Virus record (IMG/VR): IMGVR_UViG_3300046810_000338
Coordinates: 62,001 to 126,000 of that record
Length of the DNA: 64,000 nt
Strand: one strand, 5' to 3'
The notes below the pieces were generated by a model. That model saw only the letters and a program-made list of their open reading frames with translations. It had not been told where the DNA came from and searched no databases. Each line of letters opens with the position of its first letter. The first letter of the stretch is position 1. Shown here in pieces: positions 3-61,684 of this stretch. The translations under genes were made by a program, and so were the position numbers.

Positions 3-1262
3 CACAAGTCCACGCTGGCCGCCTGGAACGCCATGAACCAGAACGTAGTCCTGGACGATACCCCTGCTTACACCCTGGTCGGCCGTAACAGCAACCAGGA
101 ACAACTGATCGGTCGCATCAACACCACCGGCGAGAACTACCTCGACGAAGTGGGCATGCCAATCCGTTCCGACTTCGTCCTGGAAATGGACTCGTCCCGC
201 CATCAAGCGGGCCGTGAATTCCTGACCAGTTCGAGCAACATCGTCAAGGTTGCTGGTTACGTTGAACCGGTTTACACCCAACCGGTCCAAGACCCGAATG
301 CGCCGAACAACCAGCCGTTCCTGGCTCAGATCGTTCTGACTCGTCTGGCTACTGGCTACGACGCCGCCGACACCGAAATGAACATCCTCAGTCTGGTGAC
401 TGCGGCGATGATCCAGGTGCAAAACGGCTGGGCGGACATGTTCCGTCCACGCTACAACAAGAAAGATGGCGATGTTGATTACCGCGACATCGGTGCTCTG
501 GGTTACTGCACCGAGAAAGCTGCCAAGATCGACAGCCGTAGCGACAGCTTCAAGAACAACTTCCCGGCCTTCATGCGCGACTACTTCCGCCTCAATCAAG
601 GCGTGGTCTTCGCTCTGGACATTCCTGAAGTCGGTCCTGACGTACTGAACCTCGACATCTTCCGCGCTGTGGCCAGCGGCAACGCCAACGCAATCGCTGC
701 TTTCATCCGTGCCTGCGACAACCTGACCGGTGGCATCTACAGCAAGAAAGCGTCGATCATCGGCGATTTCTCGATGATCATCGATACCGGCAACCGCATC
801 CACAACGGCTACTACCCAACCGACACCGGCACTGCGGCGATCCGCGATATCCGCGACATCGATCTGCTGGCCGTTGCCAACCTGTACGGCAAAACCAACC
901 CTGCGGCAATGATGCAGTGGGCTGACTCGTTCTCGCCGAACACCGCTCCTGCGGCTGTACGCATGGCGAACCGCCTGGCCATCATCGACGACGCTCTGAA
1001 CGGTCGTCAGGTTATCACTGGTTACTCGGGCCGTTACTTCATCGGTCCAAAATGGTTCGAAGTGATCACCTCGGCGTGCCGTGAAGCTGGTCTGGTGGTT
1101 AACCCTGCCAACATGGTTCACGGTCTGGGCTCCGGTCTGATCATGGGCGGCTACGACTACTCGCAGTTCACTGCCGGCCAAGCTGGTCAGTCGATCTACG
1201 GTGGCGCTACCGCTGCTGGTCCAGGCGCAGCATTCAACGGCCGTCCTGGCGGTCGTTGGTAA
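3..1262 (+). CDS. chmA: Chimallin (phage nuclear shell protein), 5'-truncated by the window edge
   Basis: Frame is open from position 3. Motifs GMPIRSDFVL, DYRDIGALGY and RDIRDIDLLAVAN match my recollection of 201phi2-1 gp105 (GNPIRADIVV, DMKDIGALGW, RDRRDLDNLAALN). Lies directly upstream of the nvRNAP beta-prime N gene, as in phiKZ (gp54-gp55). Confidence 0.92.
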   Translation, partial: HKSTLAAWNAMNQNVVLDDTPAYTLVGRNSNQEQLIGRINTTGENYLDEVGMPIRSDFVLEMDSSRHQAGREFLTSSSNIVKVAGYVEPVYTQPVQDPNAPNNQPFLAQIVLTRLATGYDAADTEMNILSLVTAAMIQVQNGWADMFRPRYNKKDGDVDYRDIGALGYCTEKAAKIDSRSDSFKNNFPAFMRDYFRLNQGVVFALDIPEVGPDVLNLDIFRAVASGNANAIAAFIRACDNLTGGIYSKKASIIGDFSMIIDTGNRIHNGYYPTDTGTAAIRDIRDIDLLAVANLYGKTNPAAMMQWADSFSPNTAPAAVRMANRLAIIDDALNGRQVITGYSGRYFIGPKWFEVITSACREAGLVVNPANMVHGLGSGLIMGGYDYSQFTAGQAGQSIYGGATAAGPGAAFNGRPGGRW

Positions 1263-1274
1263 GTAATTCGGTAA

Positions 1275-1530
1275 GGCGCTTCGTTTAGACGCAGCGCCAT
1301 GCTGGATGTGAGCAAAGCCCTTTGGGGCAATAGGGTCATGGGATAGATCCCCTAATTCCCAATTGTGGAAAAGTCCTGCTCACCCCTTGTCGGATGCCCG
1401 AAACAAACTGTGTCGTTACACGGAGCTGACTCTCCATCGGGATAAACATCTGGCGGAAGATAGGGTGACACAAATGCTTCCTGACCGTAGGTTGGGAAAA
1501 GATCATGGGTAGGCTGCCCAGTGTTCACCC
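1275..1530 (+). ncRNA. Candidate structured non-coding RNA or structured 3' UTR of chmA
   Basis: No ORF in the track. About ten nested helices can be paired by hand, e.g. 1275-80/1293-98, 1308-14/1377-83, 1397-1401/1437-41, 1463-71/1521-30, 1478-86/1490-98. Ends just before a UUCG terminator hairpin. Confidence 0.55.
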
Positions 1531-1535
1531 GGTAT

Positions 1536-1555
1536 AGCCCTCCTTCGGGAGGGCT
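1536..1555 (+). terminator. Stem-loop terminator after chmA and the structured region
   Basis: AGCCCTCC-TTCG-GGAGGGCT, followed by TTACTTATGCC. Confidence 0.8.
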
Positions 1556-1596
1556 TTACTTATGCCCTCACTTACATTTTTTGTTGGAGGATTATC

Positions 1597-3087
1597 GTGG
1601 GATTAGTTGCGTATATTCTTGACCATAAACAGGTCATGGAAGATTTGCCGACCCCTCCTCTTATTGTCAATGACCTGAATTTGGACTTGGGTACCAAAGA
1701 AGGTCGCGATCAGTTGGCACTGTATTTGTCCTGTTCGTTCGAGGGCGATACGATTCCCACTATTCCAAGTTGTTTGGGTGGGCACATTACTGGCGAGCGT
1801 TACCTCGGCCGGTACTGTAAAAAGTGTAACACCAAAGTTACTAACCTGGTTGACCGGGCGATTGACAGTGGTGTTTGGATTGCTCCGCCAACTGGAGTAA
1901 AAGGGTTCATTCACCCAGAAGTGTGGAACGTTCTGTCCCCACGGCTGACGCCGCTCAAGTCGTTCTCCATGCTCAGTTGGATCTGCGATCCGTTCTATCC
2001 GGAAACGCTGGCATCCTTCCAAGGCATTCTGGAAGACTACAAGAGCAAGCATGAACGCGGTATCAACTATTTCATCGATCACTTCGATGAAATCATCGAG
2101 TTCATCATCACTTCCAAACTGTGCCAGAAGTTACCGGCGCAGGATAAAGAAGACATTCGTGAGTTCATCCGTCAAAACCGGGACAAGGTTGTGCAGAAGC
2201 ATCTGCCACTGCCGAGTCAAATCTTTGTGGTCTCTGAAAAGACTGCAATGGGTAACTACGCGGACGACAAAACGACTGCGCTGCTCGATGCGGTTTACAC
2301 GATCACCAGTACCTACAGCACCCCCATTGCTCTGGATCTGAAGCGCCGTCAATCTCACGCTGCTCGTGCTATTGCCGCGCTGGGTATCTGTTACGCCAAC
2401 ATCTGCACCAAGTTCATCGGTGGCAAGTATGGCCTGGTGCGCAGACAGAACATCGGTTCTCGTCTGCACTTTACTGGCCGTGCGGTTATCACATCGTTGA
2501 GCGACGCGCACCACTATGAAGAGTGTCATCTGCCGTGGGCATTCGCTGTGCAGATCTACGAGCCGCACTTGTGTGGTAAGTTGGCACGACGTGGCTTCTC
2601 GACCAACGATGCTCTGGCATTCTTGGAAGACAACACTCTGCAATGGAACCCATTGCTGCGTGAGCTGTTTGATGAGTTGATCAATGAGTCTCCGTTGATC
2701 GAAGGCTTCCCTAACGGAATCTTCGAAGATATCGATGCAGCCGGCAATCAAATGCGTGGCCTGCCGATCATCCTGCAACGTAACCCATCGTTGACTCGTG
2801 GTTCGGCACAACAGCTTTATGTACCTGTGATCAAAGACGACGTGGAAGATTTCACCATTTCCCTGTCGAACAACATCCTGGTTGCATACAACGCCGACTT
2901 TGACGGCGATGAGCTGAATGTCATGGTCATCCTGGACAGGAAGATGTTGAAGTCCATGTCCCGTTTCCGTGCCCACCTCGGTGCCCGCAGTCTGAGAGAG
3001 CCCCGTACTCTTTCCGACAACATGAAAATCCATGCACCAGTGGCGGCCACTTGGGCTCACTACGTGCATCACTCCGAAAAAGGTTAG
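1597..3087 (+). CDS. Non-virion RNA polymerase beta-prime N-terminal subunit (phiKZ gp55-like), uninterrupted
   Basis: Catalytic NADFDGD motif, QRNPSL motif, RLHFTGRAVITS, Zn-finger Cys (CLGGH...YCKKC); GTG start with GGAGG RBS. Confidence 0.95.
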   Translation: MGLVAYILDHKQVMEDLPTPPLIVNDLNLDLGTKEGRDQLALYLSCSFEGDTIPTIPSCLGGHITGERYLGRYCKKCNTKVTNLVDRAIDSGVWIAPPTGVKGFIHPEVWNVLSPRLTPLKSFSMLSWICDPFYPETLASFQGILEDYKSKHERGINYFIDHFDEIIEFIITSKLCQKLPAQDKEDIREFIRQNRDKVVQKHLPLPSQIFVVSEKTAMGNYADDKTTALLDAVYTITSTYSTPIALDLKRRQSHAARAIAALGICYANICTKFIGGKYGLVRRQNIGSRLHFTGRAVITSLSDAHHYEECHLPWAFAVQIYEPHLCGKLARRGFSTNDALAFLEDNTLQWNPLLRELFDELINESPLIEGFPNGIFEDIDAAGNQMRGLPIILQRNPSLTRGSAQQLYVPVIKDDVEDFTISLSNNILVAYNADFDGDELNVMVILDRKMLKSMSRFRAHLGARSLREPRTLSDNMKIHAPVAATWAHYVHHSEKG

Positions 3088-3090
3088 CGT

Positions 3091-3477
3091 ATGTCACTTG
3101 AGAACTACCCCAATCTGCATCACGCGGTGTTGATCCATCATGAAGAAGCAACTGAAAGTCTGGGAGCTGAACTGGCCGATGTAATTGACCAGGAAACTTC
3201 CACAGACTCGCTGATTGATGGTGCTGCAACAGCAGTGCTTGAACAGTTGGCGATGGTTGCAATGGTCAATGCTACAGAGGCACTGCGTACCGGCCGACCC
3301 GGCCCTGATCAGCTTAAAGTCAGACAGGGCCGTGTTAAGGTTATTGAGGGCATTCTGGAAATGGTTGAAGCCTCTGAAGCTTCCGACTATTTCCAAGACG
3401 ACGGTCAGATCAACCCACTGGATCTGATGCGTGAATTTGTGGCTTACAGCCACGCAAAGGAGAAGCAAGATGTCTAG
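3091..3477 (+). CDS. Acidic hypothetical protein, tandem paralog 1
   Basis: 128 aa ORF; N-terminal LxxYxxLH motif shared with the next two ORFs. Confidence 0.8.
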   Translation: MSLENYPNLHHAVLIHHEEATESLGAELADVIDQETSTDSLIDGAATAVLEQLAMVAMVNATEALRTGRPGPDQLKVRQGRVKVIEGILEMVEASEASDYFQDDGQINPLDLMREFVAYSHAKEKQDV

Positions 3478-3877
3478 TTTGCATCGCTATAACAAATTGC
3501 ATAAGTTGGCCCAGAACTTCTCTGGCGAGGGCCTCAACCCTAACGAACACGGGCTTTTCCAAGACCGTGTGGTTCTTGAAGCGACGATGGGTGCCTCTAC
3601 TGCACTCATCGAAGCCATGAAGGACGTTAACGCCGCTGCTGGCGAAACTCCTTTTGTAAATCGTACGCTGCTTAAGGCCGCCGCTATTTTGGCACCGGCC
3701 ATCGCCAGTGTGATTGACGTCTTGAAAGAAGACGCTGTCTGTACGGTCGAAGCCAGTTTGTTCAAGGACTTCGCTGCCGTCACCGGGTATGCCGAGGGCC
3801 TGCGTGAAGTGGTTCCATACGTGGCATCTCTTCCCGATCTGCCACCGCCTGCTCGGCCTGATGGGGTGTCAGAATGA
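3470..3877 (+). CDS. Hypothetical protein, tandem paralog 2
   Basis: Start moved to ATG 3470 (AAGGAG RBS, overlaps previous stop); LKAAAILAPAIASVIDV motif. Confidence 0.8.
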   Translation: MSSLHRYNKLHKLAQNFSGEGLNPNEHGLFQDRVVLEATMGASTALIEAMKDVNAAAGETPFVNRTLLKAAAILAPAIASVIDVLKEDAVCTVEASLFKDFAAVTGYAEGLREVVPYVASLPDLPPPARPDGVSE

Positions 3878-4365
3878 GCCGTCTGTCTAAATACGTTCAC
3901 CTCCACAAAGCCGTTACTTTCGGTGAGGAGTTGCATCTCGAAGAACTGGATGAAAATCCATTGCTCGAACCGATTCTGGTAGTATCGGCTGTCGGTGCCA
4001 TGACTGAAATGGCTGGCGGCATGATGCTCGACCAGTTCGCCCCTCCTGGCTCAACGCCCCCATCCGTTGACTACATGGCCAACTCGCTGGAAATGGCTCT
4101 GCGTGCTTCGGCCATTTTGGCTCCGGCAGTGGCAGATGTTATCGAGCTGTATCGCAACACTGACGCCTTCAACGAATGCTTCACTGAAGCTGACATGAAG
4201 GCCGATACTTGCCTGGCAGCACTGCGTCAGGTTCCTGAGTATGCAGCGGATAACCCAACCGTCGATCCCCAGATGGTTGAGACGTTCCAGCGGGCAGAAG
4301 AGGTCGAGGCTGCAAAGGTCCTGGCCCGCCTCAAAAAGGTAGAACAGATCCACACTCCCGATTAA
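3874..4365 (+). CDS. Acidic hypothetical protein, tandem paralog 3
   Basis: ATGA overlap with previous stop; LRASAILAPAVADVIEL motif. Confidence 0.8.
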   Translation: MSRLSKYVHLHKAVTFGEELHLEELDENPLLEPILVVSAVGAMTEMAGGMMLDQFAPPGSTPPSVDYMANSLEMALRASAILAPAVADVIELYRNTDAFNECFTEADMKADTCLAALRQVPEYAADNPTVDPQMVETFQRAEEVEAAKVLARLKKVEQIHTPD

Positions 4366-5010: not shown

Positions 5011-5034
5011 TGGGGGCGGCTTCGGTCGCCCCCA
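5011..5034 (+). terminator. Stem-loop terminator
   Basis: TGGGGGCGGC-TTCG-GTCGCCCCCA, then TTTCTATG and a T-run. Confidence 0.8.
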
Positions 5035-5074: not shown

Positions 5075-5503
5075 ATGGCTACTGGATACCCATCTCTTAC
5101 TGCTGAGGGTTTTATCTTTGCGGTCGATCGCAAGTGTGACCGGATTCTGATGAGCATGTTTGCAAGTGATGCTGGTCAATCGAACATGTTTGCAGGGTCT
5201 GTTACCAGTATTCAAAACATCATTTACCTGAACAGTGATGATGTCAATGCTGCTGGCACTGCTGTGGCCGCTGGCATTGAGCGCGTGCTGTCCCGATACT
5301 TTGATGGAGCCAACGTTCAAGGCGTCGTCACGGACATCGTAGACAAGCCTGGGCGAGTGGACATCAGTATTCAAGGCAGCGTTGTTCAGAACAACCGCCG
5401 CTATGACTTCGGTCGTATGCTGGAATCTGCCAACGGCATGATCCAGTCCATCATGAACAATCAAGGGGAAGTATTGTGGACGAACGTGCTGACGTACTCT
5501 TAG
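5075..5503 (+). CDS. Conserved virion/baseplate-associated protein (phiKZ gp62-like)
   Basis: ATG 5075 with GAGGG RBS; PSLTAEGFI and SDAGQSNMFAGSVTSIQ segments; synteny. Confidence 0.6.
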   Translation: MATGYPSLTAEGFIFAVDRKCDRILMSMFASDAGQSNMFAGSVTSIQNIIYLNSDDVNAAGTAVAAGIERVLSRYFDGANVQGVVTDIVDKPGRVDISIQGSVVQNNRRYDFGRMLESANGMIQSIMNNQGEVLWTNVLTYS

Positions 5504-5937
5504 TAGAAGATGTCCTTTCCAAGGTGGCCAGCGAGTATGGATTGGATGAGGTTATGGTTCGCGCCGTTGCAGCCACCGAGTCTTCTGGCGCTGTCAGTCT
5601 TTTCGATGACATTGTCGAATCAGTCCGAGACGCGGCAATTGAGCATGGGAAAGAGCACGGCCCTGTTCGAACAATCATCATCATAGGCAGCGACAACCAC
5701 TCTGCCCAACTTAAGGCTGCGTTGCAAGTCATTGGCTGTGACGTACTCGTCATGACCGAGGCAGAGGCCGTTACGTCGGAATACGGTAACGCCATGGTTG
5801 TGGCCAGCCGCCCCTCAGGCCCACGACCTGTTCAAGAGTTGTCAGAGCGCTGGTGGTTGCCTCCCCGTAAATCGAAAGGCGAAAAGAAACGTGAGCGCGC
5901 TTTTAATCGCAGGCTCTATGGACGAGGAAACTGGTAA
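5476..5937 (+). CDS. Hypothetical protein with basic C-terminal tail
   Basis: GTG start after AGGGGAAG; 153 aa; ends in a K/R-rich stretch. Confidence 0.7.
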   Translation: MDERADVLLVEDVLSKVASEYGLDEVMVRAVAATESSGAVSLFDDIVESVRDAAIEHGKEHGPVRTIIIIGSDNHSAQLKAALQVIGCDVLVMTEAEAVTSEYGNAMVVASRPSGPRPVQELSERWWLPPRKSKGEKKRERAFNRRLYGRGNW

Positions 5938-7695: not shown

Positions 7696-8527
7696 AGAGC
7701 AGGGACAATTCCCTATCTCCACAGGTACGTCGCGAGCGATTGAATCGTTGGCGAATATGATCCCCGATCAGCCCAAGATAAAGCCTGCTCCGATGGAACA
7801 GATTGACGTGCTGCTGGTGAACGTGCGCACGATCTATCGGAACATGTTGGGTTCGATTAAAGCTGTCGTCAAAGAAGACGTAGTTGCTCAGGACATCGCT
7901 GACTTCATCACGCAGGAGATGACACAGATCCGTACGGCGGTCACCAAGATCAGTAATGGTAAGGTGGACACCTACTTTTATCTGTGTCGGTATCCAAAGC
8001 TTAAAGAAGAGTTTCCGCATGCCCAACTGATTCTGCCTCAAACGCCTAAACAGCAAAGAGCCAAACAGTTGGAAGACCAGACCATGGACATTATCCTGGC
8101 CAATCCGTCTAAGCACGGAGCGCCTAAGATCTTGGACTACTTCCTAGCGGGAGATGGGTTGCAGAATGATCGAGCTGCATGCTTGACTCACCTGCCTCTG
8201 GATCTGGTCAAACGGTACGAGTTCAAAGAACTCTACCTGTTGGAATCGAACACTGGGGCTTTCAAGTCTTACCGCGACTTCTCCAGCAAGTTCAAAGTAA
8301 AACCGGCTGAGGCGTATTTCCCGTTCAGCTTGTTTACGTTACAAATCTTTGGTGATGGGGGCAAGATGTTTGCGCCCCTAGATCCAGAGGTGGTGCAATT
8401 TGTGGCCGGTCTATCCAAGCGGTTTCATTGGACATACATGACCAGCGCAGAGAAGATAAAGTTCAGCCTGAATGAGTCTGGCACCAACAAATTCAAGAGC
8501 TTCTTAAAGACCCTATTGCGCGATTAA
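7664..8527 (+). CDS. Conserved protein (phiKZ gp66-like), possible PIN/FEN-type nuclease fold
   Basis: Start moved to ATG 7664 (GAGG RBS); FPISTGT, LLVNVRTIYRN, THLPLDL, LESNTG segments. The fold is inference. Confidence 0.55.
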   Translation: MSKSVRALAGREQGQFPISTGTSRAIESLANMIPDQPKIKPAPMEQIDVLLVNVRTIYRNMLGSIKAVVKEDVVAQDIADFITQEMTQIRTAVTKISNGKVDTYFYLCRYPKLKEEFPHAQLILPQTPKQQRAKQLEDQTMDIILANPSKHGAPKILDYFLAGDGLQNDRAACLTHLPLDLVKRYEFKELYLLESNTGAFKSYRDFSSKFKVKPAEAYFPFSLFTLQIFGDGGKMFAPLDPEVVQFVAGLSKRFHWTYMTSAEKIKFSLNESGTNKFKSFLKTLLRD

Positions 8528-9343: not shown

Positions 9344-9380
9344 CATAAAAAGACGGGCCCATCAGGGCCCGGCTTTTATG
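9344..9380. terminator. Bidirectional stem-loop with CATA/TATG arms
   Basis: CATAAAA...GGGCCC-ATCA-GGGCCC...TTTTATG; A10 run upstream. Confidence 0.75.
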
Positions 9381-13997: not shown

Positions 13998-14040
13998 GGC
14001 ATAAACCCTCTCCCCTTTGGGGGAGAGGGGCTTTTATACG
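13998..14040. terminator. Bidirectional terminator between convergent genes
   Basis: GGCATAA-CCCTCTCCCC-TTTG-GGGGAGAGGG-GCTTTTATAC. Confidence 0.8.
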
Positions 14041-46851: not shown

Positions 46852-48240
46852 ATGCCAATTGTTGAAGTAGGACCGGGTAAAGAGCCCAAGGCTAAAGCTA
46901 CAGGGCAAGCGGTGCCAGTCGCTCTGGCAACCGCTGTAGTGCAAACCCGTAACACGCCTCGCCAGTCATTGATTACGCAAATTTCTGGGTCAGTGTATGT
47001 AATTGATTACTTTCGCCAGAACCGTGCAGCGAATGATCAGGTGCGTGCACTGGCGTTGGACCTTGACCCGGTCTATCAAAGCTACGACCGTATCAGTCAG
47101 ATGGAAACGCGTCGTCAGGGCGATCTGAGCTTCAGTGTCAATGATACCGACAAGAAGCGTACGGTCACTGGTGAGCTGACTATGTACCCAGGCTGTCCTG
47201 TGCCTAACGAAGGGGACATGTTCCTCGCTGACGCAGGGCAGGGTCGTCGGGGCATCTTCCAGGTCACCAACGCCATTCCGCTCAGCTACTACATGCAGAC
47301 CTGCTACAGTATCCAGTTCTCTTTGATGGACATTGAGAACGCCGATTTGCTGGCTAACCTTGATCTGAAGACCGACCAGCGTTACCAGTTCATTAAAGAC
47401 TTTGCACGGTCCGGCAAAAACCCAATCATTATCGATGAGCTTTACAACGATTACCGGAACCTGTCGCGCGTTCAGGGCACGATGATTTCCGAGTACATGC
47501 GTTTGTTCTTCGATGAAACCAGTCAAACCTTAATGATCCCTGGACAGGAGCGCGCTTGTTATGATCCTTTTTTGGTTACTGCTATGCTCGGGCTACTCGA
47601 AACTTCCCAGCATGGGTTCGTTCGAAAGCTCACCGCCCACAACCTGGACATCCAATACGCTTTCAGAACCACCACGGTCTGGGACGCGTTGCTCCAAGTT
47701 GAACCCAGCCACATCCACCTCGCCTGCCAGCGACTTGGCCTGACCGATAAAACGGTTGTCCAAACGCGAGCGCCATTCGGTGGAGCGTACTGGAACCACA
47801 TCGATGAAATCATGTACCCCATGGAACCCCGTGAAGATGCCATGATCCATCGGGTGGGTAACATCGACGCTATCACCGAGCGCCTGGACCATGGTCCTGC
47901 TCCGGTACGTGACTTCTTCCGTCTGATCAGCACCAAAGATACCTCGCTGGTTGAGATTGTAGAAGAGCGTGCTCCGACAGACATGGTACCCAACATCCAC
48001 AATGTGGCGGACGACGATTACTACGTCTTCAGCAAAGCGTTCTACCAACAAGACCATGCCAATCAATCTCTGCTGGAGAAAACGGTGTGGAGCGTGTTGG
48101 AGCAGAATGACGTGGATGTTCCGACGCTTTCCTCGTTGGTAAACCAATCCAAGTATTGGGACAAGCTTGAGCGTTTCTACTTTGTCCCTGTTCTGATCCT
48201 GCTGTGCACGCTTGCACTGCGAGGACCTTCTTCCATTTAA
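46852..48240 (+). CDS. Virion structural protein (neck candidate, phiKZ gp99-like)
   Basis: VPNEGDMFLADAG, YDPFLV, LERFYFVPVL segments; synteny. Confidence 0.62.
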   Translation: MPIVEVGPGKEPKAKATGQAVPVALATAVVQTRNTPRQSLITQISGSVYVIDYFRQNRAANDQVRALALDLDPVYQSYDRISQMETRRQGDLSFSVNDTDKKRTVTGELTMYPGCPVPNEGDMFLADAGQGRRGIFQVTNAIPLSYYMQTCYSIQFSLMDIENADLLANLDLKTDQRYQFIKDFARSGKNPIIIDELYNDYRNLSRVQGTMISEYMRLFFDETSQTLMIPGQERACYDPFLVTAMLGLLETSQHGFVRKLTAHNLDIQYAFRTTTVWDALLQVEPSHIHLACQRLGLTDKTVVQTRAPFGGAYWNHIDEIMYPMEPREDAMIHRVGNIDAITERLDHGPAPVRDFFRLISTKDTSLVEIVEERAPTDMVPNIHNVADDDYYVFSKAFYQQDHANQSLLEKTVWSVLEQNDVDVPTLSSLVNQSKYWDKLERFYFVPVLILLCTLALRGPSSI

Positions 48241-52997: not shown

Positions 52998-53550
52998 GTC
53001 TCGGTCCTATATCTACAATTCTTCATCGAAGGCGGTTGCGGGCACGCTGAACTTGATCGCAGTGCCCCGCTGGCTTGAGCTTTCGCTCAAGTCTAAAAAT
53101 ACTACGCTGGAGCAAGCCTTGGGCGGCGATCCTAACGGTGGGTTCTGCTGCTATGCTTTGGATGGTCTCACTCCAGGCATAGTGTCTCGCGACGAAGTTA
53201 CACTTCACGACAGAGTGAGCTACTCGTTGTCGTCTTGGCTGTTCCCTGATAATAAGGAACGTCCTAAGCGAGACCAACTGTATGCAGAGCTTATCAACGA
53301 CTGGCATGCGGTCCCGATGGTCAAGGACCTTAAATTGAATCTCCACCCTATTATTCTGGGGGAGAATCTGATTGGCCTCTACAACGTCGAAGAAAAGCCT
53401 GGCGTTACTGATACAGATTTATATGGGCGTATTCTGCGGTGTGCGCATACCTTGGTATACAACAAGCTTGGCTTGGGTGCCTTGGGGTGTGACTTGATCA
53501 AGGATGTGCTGAACGAAATTTCGATCGGCCAGACGATGGCTGCTCAATAG
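52996..53550 (+). CDS. Probable virion protein (phiKZ gp119-like)
   Basis: ATG 52996 with AGGAG RBS at 52981; upstream of capsid gene. Confidence 0.65.
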   Translation: MSRSYIYNSSSKAVAGTLNLIAVPRWLELSLKSKNTTLEQALGGDPNGGFCCYALDGLTPGIVSRDEVTLHDRVSYSLSSWLFPDNKERPKRDQLYAELINDWHAVPMVKDLKLNLHPIILGENLIGLYNVEEKPGVTDTDLYGRILRCAHTLVYNKLGLGALGCDLIKDVLNEISIGQTMAAQ

Positions 53551-53678
53551 CTCTGTTCTCCTGCGCCCCACGGGGCGTAAGGTTATACAGGTATCTTATA
53601 GCGAAAGTATCTTGCCGGTACAATCGTTTGTTAGTCGACTAACACAAACGTAACGTCCAGTAACTGGAGAACCACAGA

Positions 53679-59311: not shown

Positions 59312-61543
59312 ATGCATCAACAAGCGCTGCCGTTTCCCGTCGAGGGTCCGGTAAACGGCCACTGGATTGAAAACCCGTTCAATGTGCAACTGCCTATCCC
59401 GGCGGTGCCATTTGCACAGACCAACCCTCAGCTGCTTTGGGTGGTCGCTACAACTGCTGCGATTCTGGTCAACCAGTTGCAAGACAACTGCCGCGGTGGT
59501 CCGGTCTCGATCTTTGCGTACAACCTGTTCAGCCACAACTTCTACAACAACCAATACTTCGCAGCCATCGTTACCGACGGCTCCGAGTTCGCTTTGCAGC
59601 AACTGCAAATCATGCAGCAAGGCAGTGATCCTCAAGCGGTCGTTGGCAAGGCTGTGCAGTTCTATTGCGGTTATGCAGTTGCTGCCTGTGCCACCAAGTT
59701 TGATCTGAGCCCGTATCTGACTCAGGACATGGTGAACCGCATCAACCACACGCTTCAACAGTGGAAGAACATTCAGGCACCGCAGCAACAGCAACAAGCC
59801 TACGGCGTCCCAACTGGTCAGATTCCAGGGGCAGCCCGCGGTGCTTACGGTGCAGCAGACCCGGCGCAGTACGCTTCAGCCAATGTTGGTATCTCTACCA
59901 CAGCAGGGATTGGCGCACTCGCCTACAACCCTGCCTCGGTGCAGGACAACAGTAAGTTCGGAGCAGCCGCAATGCAAGATACCCGCCCCCGTCCGGATAG
60001 CGCAAATACCCCTGAGCCAGAATTGCAGGCTCTGGGTGTCGTTGAATCTTCCGGCATCGGTCAACCTCGTGCCATTCCTCAAGCCCGCGTTACTGTTGAA
60101 CGTGATGTCTCGGGCGTCATTCCGCAGTCTCAGCCAGTGGGCGTAACTGTCAGCTCCTCTATTCCTGAAGTGTCGGTGCTGGGCAACGACGACTTCAACG
60201 AGGAGTGGATGAGCAAGGTCAAGTTCGACAACGATGTCGATCGCAAGCCTGATTCCGAGTACCACATCCCTGACACTGTCACGGGTCGTTTCCTGTTCCG
60301 TCCGATGCATGTCGAGGTTAATCTGCCGACTACATTGGAAGAAGCAGAACTGGAAGAGCCTGAAGACCTCGTTACGCTCGATATCGAGTCGTTGGTTAAC
60401 GGCGATGACGACTGGTCGATCCTCAAGCTCAAGAACGGCTCTACGGCGGCGATGACGACCAGCAAAGATACTGGCCGTACCTGGACCATGGAACAACCCC
60501 ACGACCATCCTTACAACCCGCAGAGCCACTTCCGCTATTTGGTCAGCGAGGAAGACTCTGCCGACCACTGCTATGAAGCGTTCATGGCTCGGGAAAAAGA
60601 AGTGGACTACCTCGATCTGGAGTTTAATGAATCCAAACGGGCAGCGGCGCGTCAGGTAATGTTGGCCGGGCAAAACATCATGCCCGATCTCAGCGTCCTG
60701 CACTCCATTGTTCCACGCGGTGTTCCTTACACCATCATCAATGCCCTCGCTGATCTGGACAAGGCAGAATCTTCCGCTAACGCAGAAGACCATCTCGCTG
60801 AGCTGGAAAAGTTCCAGGGCAAGCTGAACTTCTTCGAGCGCCATAAAGGCCCTCAAGAGATGCACGCGGTTATCACCAAGATCGAGCAGTTCCAGCAACG
60901 TGTCCGAGCCCGCAACGCTGTAGCCGCAACCTGTGGCTACTTCATCCGCAGCTTTGTGGCGGAAGAAATGGTCAAGCGGGTTAACGCAATTAACTCAGCC
61001 TCCATCGACAAGCGTGTTGCAATCGTTCTGTTGATGGGCGATGAACTGCTCAAATGCAATCCACGAGCTTATCTGTACCTCAGCACCGAACTGACCAAAG
61101 TGGTCAACCAGGCGCTGTCGGCAATGCTCGGTATCACCACCTTCGAGATCACTGATTTCTTCGTTGATTACTTTGATCTCTGTAACGAAGTTAGCACGAG
61201 CTTCTCTGACGAGGTGTTCAAGCAATTTGGCCTGGCCATGTCGGCCGCGCTGGACTCGTTCAGCTTCGGCATGGACGGTAGCATGTTGACGGTGCGCCAG
61301 TCGTATCGTCTGATTGGTTTGCCGATGGCCCTGGCCAGCTTTGACCTGCCAAGTACGAATGGGGATTCGTACAAGGTATTGAGCAGTCTTGCTCCTGAGC
61401 TGTACACGATCATCCGGGCGTTGATTCAAGACCCCGAGACCACCAAAGGTGCTCGCACCTACATGCACACCGTCTCCGGCGAGACGTTTGAAGTCGTTGA
61501 GTCCATTTGGGATGAAGGCTATCTGACTCTGCTGCGTAGCTGA
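59312..61543 (+). CDS. Conserved hypothetical protein with Q/A/G-rich linker
   Basis: 743 aa, AAGGA RBS; low-complexity region around residues 150-280. Confidence 0.72.
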   Translation: MHQQALPFPVEGPVNGHWIENPFNVQLPIPAVPFAQTNPQLLWVVATTAAILVNQLQDNCRGGPVSIFAYNLFSHNFYNNQYFAAIVTDGSEFALQQLQIMQQGSDPQAVVGKAVQFYCGYAVAACATKFDLSPYLTQDMVNRINHTLQQWKNIQAPQQQQQAYGVPTGQIPGAARGAYGAADPAQYASANVGISTTAGIGALAYNPASVQDNSKFGAAAMQDTRPRPDSANTPEPELQALGVVESSGIGQPRAIPQARVTVERDVSGVIPQSQPVGVTVSSSIPEVSVLGNDDFNEEWMSKVKFDNDVDRKPDSEYHIPDTVTGRFLFRPMHVEVNLPTTLEEAELEEPEDLVTLDIESLVNGDDDWSILKLKNGSTAAMTTSKDTGRTWTMEQPHDHPYNPQSHFRYLVSEEDSADHCYEAFMAREKEVDYLDLEFNESKRAAARQVMLAGQNIMPDLSVLHSIVPRGVPYTIINALADLDKAESSANAEDHLAELEKFQGKLNFFERHKGPQEMHAVITKIEQFQQRVRARNAVAATCGYFIRSFVAEEMVKRVNAINSASIDKRVAIVLLMGDELLKCNPRAYLYLSTELTKVVNQALSAMLGITTFEITDFFVDYFDLCNEVSTSFSDEVFKQFGLAMSAALDSFSFGMDGSMLTVRQSYRLIGLPMALASFDLPSTNGDSYKVLSSLAPELYTIIRALIQDPETTKGARTYMHTVSGETFEVVESIWDEGYLTLLRS

Positions 61544-61626: not shown

Positions 61627-61670
61627 AGACTCCAGGCCCACCGGGGGCCTGGAGTCTGCTTTCACTTATG
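61627..61670. terminator. Bidirectional terminator
   Basis: 13 bp stem AGACTCCAGGCCC-ACCGG-GGGCCTGGAGTCT, GCATA before, CACTTATG and T-run after. Confidence 0.82.
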
Positions 61671-61684
61671 TTTATTTTTTTGTA

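Follow-up and report, generated by a model that had tools for sequence, protein, structure and literature searches.

Does the long gap behind the gene for the phage nuclear shell protein carry a genuine RNA element in an uncultivated jumbo phage, and, if so, what might it do? ChmA (chimallin) builds the phage nucleus, the proteinaceous shell that defines the Chimalliviridae and shields their DNA from CRISPR and restriction. Its message is among the first and most abundant made, and RNA-targeting approaches against it are in active use, yet control of chmA expression after transcription is essentially unexplored. The sequence analysed here (the window, 64,000 nucleotides) is part of the 228.5-kb IMG/VR contig IMGVR_UViG_3300046810_000338. 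A preliminary description, made from the sequence alone, proposed that the roughly 260 nt between chmA and its terminator form one densely structured RNA that it did not recognize as a named family, and read it as a stand-alone phage ncRNA, a ribozyme, or a chmA mRNA element. We find that the observation itself is confirmed and strengthened by comparison with relatives, while the interpretation is supported only in part.

A folded, non-coding stretch follows chmA

The open reading frame at 33-1262 (+) is the 3′ part of chmA (Pfam PF25677, E=4.5e-49), with tblastn hits to annotated nuclear shell proteins; the full gene encodes 683 aa on the parent contig (locus L001, 3179-5230). It is followed at 1597-3087 (+) by a GTG-initiated gene for an RNA polymerase beta′-like subunit (N-terminal part, counterpart of phiKZ gp55; PF00623, E=2.3e-9), and this gene order is conserved in every relative and every cultured chimallivirus examined. 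The closest ChmA proteins in GenBank phages are only 25-31% identical, and megablast and blastn searches with the locus returned no DNA match to any GenBank phage, with only terminator-sized chance hits for the gap alone. The phage therefore represents a deep, uncultivated chimallivirus lineage, and on a ChmA tree its clade sits on a long branch away from the two cultured Xanthomonas and Burkholderia phages used as outgroups.

The intervening gap (1263-1596, 334 nt) is the largest genuinely non-coding stretch in the window, where the median gap between picked ORFs is 41 nt. Two other large gaps (8117-8512 and 53347-53630) were artefacts of ORF picking and lie in coding sequence, one of them covered by a 332-aa ORF. 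The + strand of 1263-1560 has a minimum free energy of -123.4 kcal/mol (z = -4.64), and none of 200 dinucleotide shuffles is as stable. Without the terminator z is -3.33 (1 of 200 shuffles as good), while the reverse strand gives only z = -2.59. The unconstrained fold reproduces all of the helix sets listed in the preliminary description at the positions given there. The one item not confirmed is a proposed alternative pairing of 1302-1309 with 1446-1453, taken as a hint of a switch or pseudoknot: it is possible on paper, but follows from the near-duplicate YYGGAUG strands of modules A and C (below) and has no independent support.

Relatives resolve four modules and a terminator

In order to test whether this fold is conserved, we compiled sixteen distinct metagenomic relatives (ChmA 53-64% identical). 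A protein search with full-length ChmA found 12 of these at 53-64% identity, whose contigs were retrieved, and pattern scans added further members from IMG/VR and JGI metagenomes (L033, L043, L044, and L175; L numbers denote individual loci). In all of them chmA is followed by the RNAP beta′ gene, and the gap measures 72-75 nt in two relatives (L006 and L009) and 206-382 nt in the rest. Side-by-side comparison shows that the gap is better described as a string of separable domains than as the single RNA proposed earlier, with four independently folding modules (A, B, C, and D) in the window, while other relatives carry further module types, here called A′, X, Y, and Z.

Module A (1266-1307, +) starts 4 nt after the stop codon (1260-1262) and consists of an outer stem (1266-1273/1300-1307), an inner hairpin (1275-1280/1293-1298), and an apical helix (1282-1284/1289-1291). 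RNAalifold on 10 relatives yields 13 pairs, 6 of them with compensatory changes, and a covariance model of the module (R3) scores it at 49 bits. Module B (1308-1383, +) is a closed multi-branch domain with an outer stem (1308-1314/1377-1383) and three hairpins at 1317-1320/1325-1328, 1340-1343/1348-1351 (inside 1333-1335/1358-1360), and 1367-1369/1374-1376. Its MAFFT alignment was too poor for formal covariation counts, and per-sequence folds were used instead: homologous domains in L004, L005, L007, L010, and L016 each fold closed, with entirely different but complementary outer stems and a conserved first hairpin (RCCC-loop-GGGY).

Module C (1387-1456, +) comprises an outer stem (1387-1396/1447-1456), an inner stem (1397-1401/1437-1441), and hairpins at 1410-1413/1418-1421 and 1422-1425/1432-1435, with a conserved AAWCAAA strand and a GGAG-CUGRCU-CUCC hairpin. 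RNAalifold on 9 relatives yields 14 pairs, 10 with compensatory changes. Module D (1461-1536, +) is a three-way junction formed by P1 (1463-1471/1521-1523 plus 1525-1530), P2 (1479-1486/1490-1497, with a GNA triloop), and P3 (1506-1511/1515-1520, with invariant UAGGCUG).

An intrinsic terminator follows (1531-1560, +), identified by a terminator scan, with a GC-rich stem (1536-1543/1548-1555) and a UUCG loop. It is extended by pairing of GGUA (1531-1534) with UACU (1557-1560), so that the conserved linker GGGUAUAG belongs to the terminator. The stem covaries among relatives, and in L006 and L009, which lack modules, the same hairpin directly follows chmA. A conserved block, TTTACTTATGCCC...TTTTTTGT, together with a ribosome binding site (GGAGGA, 1586-1591), occupies 1556-1596 (+). 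The same tail follows other terminators in the window, and this block may be the terminator tail, the promoter or leader of the next gene, or both.

Covariation identifies the + strand RNA as the selected molecule

Module D is the best sampled, with 14 sequences of which 13 are distinct. In its alignments, 98.2% of cells form standard pairs against 81.8% after shuffling, and 15 of 26 pairs have changes on both sides. The covariation score is 0.574, against 0.05-0.09 (at most 0.094) when partners are slid by 1-3 columns, and none of 500 shuffles reaches the observed values. P1 and P2 carry the covariation, while P3 and its loop UAGGCUG are invariant, and the 27 invariant columns are concentrated in junctions and loops. 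About 47 cells are G-U while at most 6 are non-standard, indicating that the selected molecule is the + strand RNA rather than duplex DNA or the antisense strand. Overall, module D is about 70% identical in nucleotides between relatives, similar to the flanking coding DNA at 72-73%. A candidate pseudoknot of 3 bp between J1/2 (1476-1478, GCU) and the P3 loop (1512-1514, GGC) is 100% paired, and the only sequence departing from the consensus at either position (L002) changes both, from C-G to U-A, which is suggestive but represents a single event.

The gap matches neither a gene nor a described RNA family

The preliminary description had named a conserved small ORF, absent covariation, or unexceptional folding as grounds for rejecting it, and none of these was observed. 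ORFs of 49-58 codons exist on both strands, but relatives have stops in nearly all six frames, their indels of 1 and 2 nt are not multiples of three, and a PHROGs search with the three small ORFs returned no match. Against Rfam 15 (4227 models, including ribozymes, riboswitches, sRNAs, and tRNA-like elements), the region 1100-1800 searched at E<=10 with permissive filters gave only Whalefall-1 (17.8 bits against a threshold of 37, lying on the terminator, a chance match) and GadY (15.1 against 45), and the whole window gave no hit at gathering thresholds. The same searches readily found group I introns elsewhere in the relatives' loci, so the method works, but nothing else there. No tRNA or tmRNA genes were found in the window.

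The modules are tied to chmA but turn over rapidly

A 20-base degenerate signature of module D has no match in one genome from each of 185,579 bacterial and archaeal species, 2 matches in JGI metagenomes, and 4 in IMG/VR, all on jumbo-phage-sized or fragmentary contigs, between chmA and the RNAP gene and once per contig. A covariance model of module D (R1) likewise finds a single copy per genome, always after chmA. The module C model (R2) finds one copy per locus at 41-86 bits, with nothing elsewhere in the window and nothing in cultured chimalliviruses. The module A model gave one weak second hit in the window (17.8 bits, E about 0.008), inside a 743-aa ORF at 61222-61256, which we judged to be chance.

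On the ChmA tree, sister phages differ in module content: L004 (A-B-C) against L005 (A-B-D), L011 (A-X-D) against L013 (A-C-D), and L007 (A′-B-C-D) against L008 (A′-C-D), while L006 and L009 have none. Nevertheless, D, C, and A are shared across the deepest splits of the clade. The modules are therefore old, individually dispensable, and exchanged by recombination.

Cultured Pseudomonas phages carry a different structured stretch at the same position

Cultured Pseudomonas chimalliviruses, whose ChmA proteins are only 25-30% identical, also have a long ORF-poor stretch between the chmA stop codon and a terminator just upstream of the RNAP gene, measuring 515 nt in PhiPA3, 435 nt in Psa21, 394 nt in the phiKZ type, 391 nt in PS119XW, and 225 nt in 201phi2-1 (where it is followed by gp106). 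Folding z values for these range from -2.5 to -6.7. In phiKZ the stretch lies between chmA (gp54) and gp55 at 47529-47922, is unannotated in RefSeq, and is among the largest gaps in a 49-kb sample of the genome. It is 85% identical between phiKZ and PS119XW, although the chmA coding DNA of the two phages hardly aligns. Of 115 predicted consensus pairs, 7 show compensatory changes, 8 show one-sided changes that keep pairing, and none is broken, while substitutions are three times denser in unpaired columns. PhiPA3 shares several blocks of this stretch.

The helices and motifs differ from those of the uncultivated clade, and models R1, R2, and R3 gave no significant hit in these phages, with or without filters. 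The phiKZ-type stretch is thus an analogue at the same site rather than a demonstrable homologue, and the positional parallel may reflect convergence or the coincidence of a permissive site. Enterobacterial chimalliviruses have no long trailer (gaps of 93 nt in Eowyn, 105 nt in RAY, and 99 nt in SA002) and neither do Xanthomonas chimalliviruses; LucasX has a 250-nt gap, but its terminator lies about 25 nt after chmA. We found no description of a chmA trailer RNA in the phiKZ dRNA-seq, Grad-seq, ONT-cappable-seq, or antisense-oligomer papers, as far as the literature was searchable, and the one new small gene reported there (sORF007, from the dRNA-seq paper) lies outside the chmA-gp55 gap.

Interpretation and rival readings

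Taken together, the comparison establishes a + strand RNA of independently folding domains under purifying selection, its position between the chmA stop codon and chmA's terminator, its modularity, its single copy as assessed with the models above, and its restriction to this phage clade. That it is transcribed with chmA as a 3′UTR, that any factor binds it, and that it affects the message are inferences from sequence alone, as would be any accumulation as a discrete RNA, self-cleavage, or exonuclease stalling. We consider a real, selected 3′UTR RNA structure very likely. Co-transcription is suggested because no terminator or conserved promoter-like block lies between the stop codon and module A, the only terminator lies at the far end, and relatives without modules place that same terminator directly after chmA. 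Stems vary freely while loops and junctions are invariant (UAGGCUG, the GNA triloop, CAAAUGC, and AAAAGAU in D; AAWCAAA and CUGGCU in C), so the domains are probably recognized specifically rather than acting as generic stable hairpins.

Of the three alternatives proposed initially, the evidence favors a chmA mRNA element bound by a factor. In this view, which we hold only tentatively (probability about 0.4), the trailer would be a cis-acting, partly redundant platform whose folded domains are recognized by one or more phage or host proteins, and would thereby set the stability, translation, or place of translation of the most important early phage message, possibly leaving a stable 3′ fragment as a by-product. 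The tie to chmA in this clade and the occurrence of a different structured RNA at the same site in very distant chimalliviruses make a cis function the simplest reading, with redundancy among modules explaining their turnover. However, since two clade members lack the element and the enterobacterial and Xanthomonas phages lack any long trailer, it is not essential for ChmA production, and a position behind the strongest early gene could simply be a convenient way to express an RNA at high level.

The main rival, less likely but not excluded, is that the modules are cut out of the chmA transcript, or made from an internal start, and accumulate as stable RNAs acting in trans, for example as decoys or sponges for a host RNA-binding protein, nuclease, or RNA-sensing defense, or by base-pairing with targets. 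Their compact domains have conserved loops, their rapid turnover between sister phages and complete loss in some lineages fit accessory or arms-race functions, and there is precedent in phiKZ, where Grad-seq identified an abundant, stable RNA of ~100 nt processed from the PHIKZ298 3′UTR and including the terminator hairpin (PMC8545117). On the other hand, a trans-acting RNA does not require strict association with chmA or an analogous stretch at the same site in distant phages, the terminator tail UUUACUU is a poor Hfq-type 3′ end, and no target complementary to the invariant D loop was found in the window at up to 2 mismatches. Control of read-through into the polymerase gene, by a ligand- or protein-responsive attenuator or a put-like RNA that modifies the transcribing phage polymerase, is doubtful. 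Module D (or C where D is absent) abuts the terminator in every relative, D has riboswitch-like anatomy with a three-way junction, invariant junction and loop, and possible pseudoknot, the downstream genes encode the phage's own polymerase, and phiKZ chmA is reported in many transcription units (PMC10914365). Yet partition-function folding of D plus the terminator in 11 relatives showed P1 (0.65-1.0) and the terminator (>=0.95) coexisting in all of them with no competing pairing, so the suggestion of a switch is not supported; moreover, the linker GGGUAUAG pairs with the terminator tail rather than with the putative aptamer, the terminator is unchanged in relatives without modules, modules A and B are far from it, and no Rfam riboswitch matched.

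A self-cleaving ribozyme defining an RNA end is very unlikely. Small ribozymes are common in phage genomes and module D is a compact three-way junction with invariant junction nucleotides, but no ribozyme model matched even at E<=10, there is no known catalytic core, the junction strands CAAAUGC and AAAAGAU do not contain the hammerhead CUGANGA/GAAA core, and relatives lacking D have no obvious replacement. Equally improbable are a small protein-coding gene, a DNA-level signal (origin, packaging, or recombination site), or a chance fold: although the C-GNA-G triloop hairpin is also a very stable DNA mini-hairpin motif, the absence of conserved ORFs, the compensatory substitutions with abundant G-U only on the + strand, and the margins over shuffled and slid controls argue against them. 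At the speculative end, and unlikely on present evidence, the chmA trailers of chimalliviruses, both modules A-D and the unrelated phiKZ-type stretch, could be RNA address labels, that is, modular, redundant protein-binding domains that hold or deliver the chimallin message to the site where the phage nucleus is being built, or couple its translation and decay to shell assembly, as a bacterial-virus counterpart of eukaryotic 3′UTR zipcodes. Module D would then be a new class of compact, pseudoknotted three-way-junction RNA with a specific protein or small-molecule partner.

Structured 3′UTRs and 3′UTR-derived RNAs are known in general, and what is added here is a set of covariation-supported motifs, above all the module D three-way junction, to the short list of structured RNAs known from phages, together with a comparably constrained but different stretch in phiKZ, PhiPA3, PS119XW, Psa21, and 201phi2-1, which makes the question directly testable in model phages. 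If the element is only a stabilizer, the result is modest; if it recruits a factor or yields an active ncRNA, it opens a new layer of jumbo-phage biology.

Comparison with described structured RNAs

Like the PHIKZ298-derived RNA, and bacterial 3′UTR-derived sRNAs in general, the element is structured, has no ORF, lies between a stop codon and the intrinsic terminator of the same gene, and would share its 3′ end with the mRNA. It differs from the PHIKZ298 RNA in having about 270 nt and four multi-helix domains rather than two stem-loops, and shows no sequence similarity to it. The modular 3′UTRs of RNA viruses (flavivirus xrRNA and dumbbell elements, plant-virus 3′ translation enhancers, and tRNA-like structures) are likewise strings of independently folding, partly redundant domains that are duplicated, lost, or swapped between relatives, and module D combines a well-supported three-way junction with a possible pseudoknot, resting on one double substitution, as xrRNAs combine such features. 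Here, however, the RNA would belong to a DNA phage mRNA rather than a viral genome, there is no sequence or model match, an exonuclease-stalling ring fold could be proposed only by analogy, and the likely threat in Gram-negative hosts is 3′-to-5′ decay and RNase E rather than a 5′-to-3′ exonuclease.

Riboswitch aptamers with three-way junctions share invariant junction and loop nucleotides with covarying stems and a position immediately upstream of a terminator, whereas module D lies after a coding gene and lacks an Rfam match and a mutually exclusive terminator/antiterminator pairing. The RNase III processing hairpins between phage T7 early genes and the HK022 put RNAs are structured cis-acting RNAs in phage intergenic regions that act on mRNA 3′ ends or on the transcribing polymerase; no long near-perfect duplex of the RNase III type and no similarity to put is apparent in the trailer.

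Shorter motifs were less informative. Enrichment of GGA and CA motifs (RsmA or Crc/Hfq sites), inspected by eye only, was not convincing, and a 14-nt scan of IMG/VR for the module C hairpin was too unspecific to use (over 119 chance hits). A 15-nt scan for the A′ loop gave mostly chance hits apart from L175 (a relative) and L176, and a hairpin with the same 14-nt loop as module A′ occurs in another jumbo-phage contig in a different context, an observation that would fit the trans-acting reading.

Structured and unannotated stretches in cultured chimalliviruses

Cultured Pseudomonas chimalliviruses carry an unannotated, structured stretch of 225-515 nt between chmA and the terminator before the RNAP beta' gene. 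This stretch lies at 3731-4124 of L040 (the locus of the phiKZ-like phage Bobae, equal to phiKZ NC_004629 47529-47922), and at 3665-4055, 3680-4194, 3728-4162, and 3710-3934 of the corresponding loci L041, L038, L042, and L039, respectively. When phiKZ is compared with PS119XW, the stretch is 85% identical, while the chmA coding DNA barely aligns, and of 115 predicted pairs, 7 are compensatory and 0 are broken. It shows no detectable homology to modules A, C, or D. In the phiKZ segment spanning 25000-74000 (L045), other large unannotated gaps are found near chmA, namely the divergent gp42/gp43 region (L045 10764-11341, 578 nt), gp53-gp54 (L045 20338-20648, 311 nt), and gp70-gp70.1 (L045 37630-38101, 472 nt).

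Introns and endonuclease genes near chmA

In many relatives and in phiKZ-type phages, group I introns (Rfam RF00028, 49-89 bits) interrupt or follow the RNAP beta'-like gene downstream of chmA, often with HNH endonuclease genes. These introns were located at 5264-5513 and 5779-6099 of L040, 5294-5599 of L041, 5183-5555 of L036, 8442-8790 of L016, 7793-8119 of L018, and 4460-4771 of L004 (all chmA loci of relatives or phiKZ-type phages), whereas the copy of the gene in the window (1597-3087) is uninterrupted. In addition, a GIY-YIG homing-endonuclease gene sits directly upstream of chmA in two relatives (L008 66-686 and L018 2812-3432) and, together with the HNH genes nearby, may drive the recombination that shuffles the trailer modules.

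Recurring motifs around terminators, leaders, and trailer hairpins

Terminator hairpins of this phage are followed by a recurring tail, TTTACTTATG / TTTTATG / TTTCTATG, often with a second T-run (TTTTTTGT). The tail was observed at window positions 1556-1584 and 61650-61684, and after the hairpins at 5011-5034, 9354-9371, and 14006-14029, while phiKZ-type terminators are followed by TTATATCTCCTTTTTTTGT. This could be a phage-polymerase termination signal or a TATG-type promoter placed after terminators.

The chmA 5′ leader (3090-3178 of L001, the parent-contig locus, upstream of the window) and the equivalent region of the relatives' loci L002-L018 is also strongly conserved across the clade. 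Conservation encompasses the block TTCATTGGCCAA, a hairpin before it, and AAGGAGACGGCA directly before the ATG. The palindromic UGGCCA could pair with the GGCCAA of the A′ loop in the relatives that have it.

The 14-nt loop of module A′, GAAGGGCCAACCUA, which is found in relatives L007 (compare 5555-5590), L008, L016, and L175, recurs on a different stem (GGGGGC/GCCCCC) in another jumbo-phage-sized contig, IMGVR_UViG_3300034161_000008 (218 kb; locus L176, about 3260-3300 on the minus strand). There it sits just after a stop codon, in a locus with no chmA, and the hairpin may be an independent, portable RNA motif. Within the window, a weak match of the module A model (17.8 bits, rough E 0.008) at 61222-61256 on the plus strand lies inside a 743-aa ORF (59312-61543), and was judged to be a chance match.
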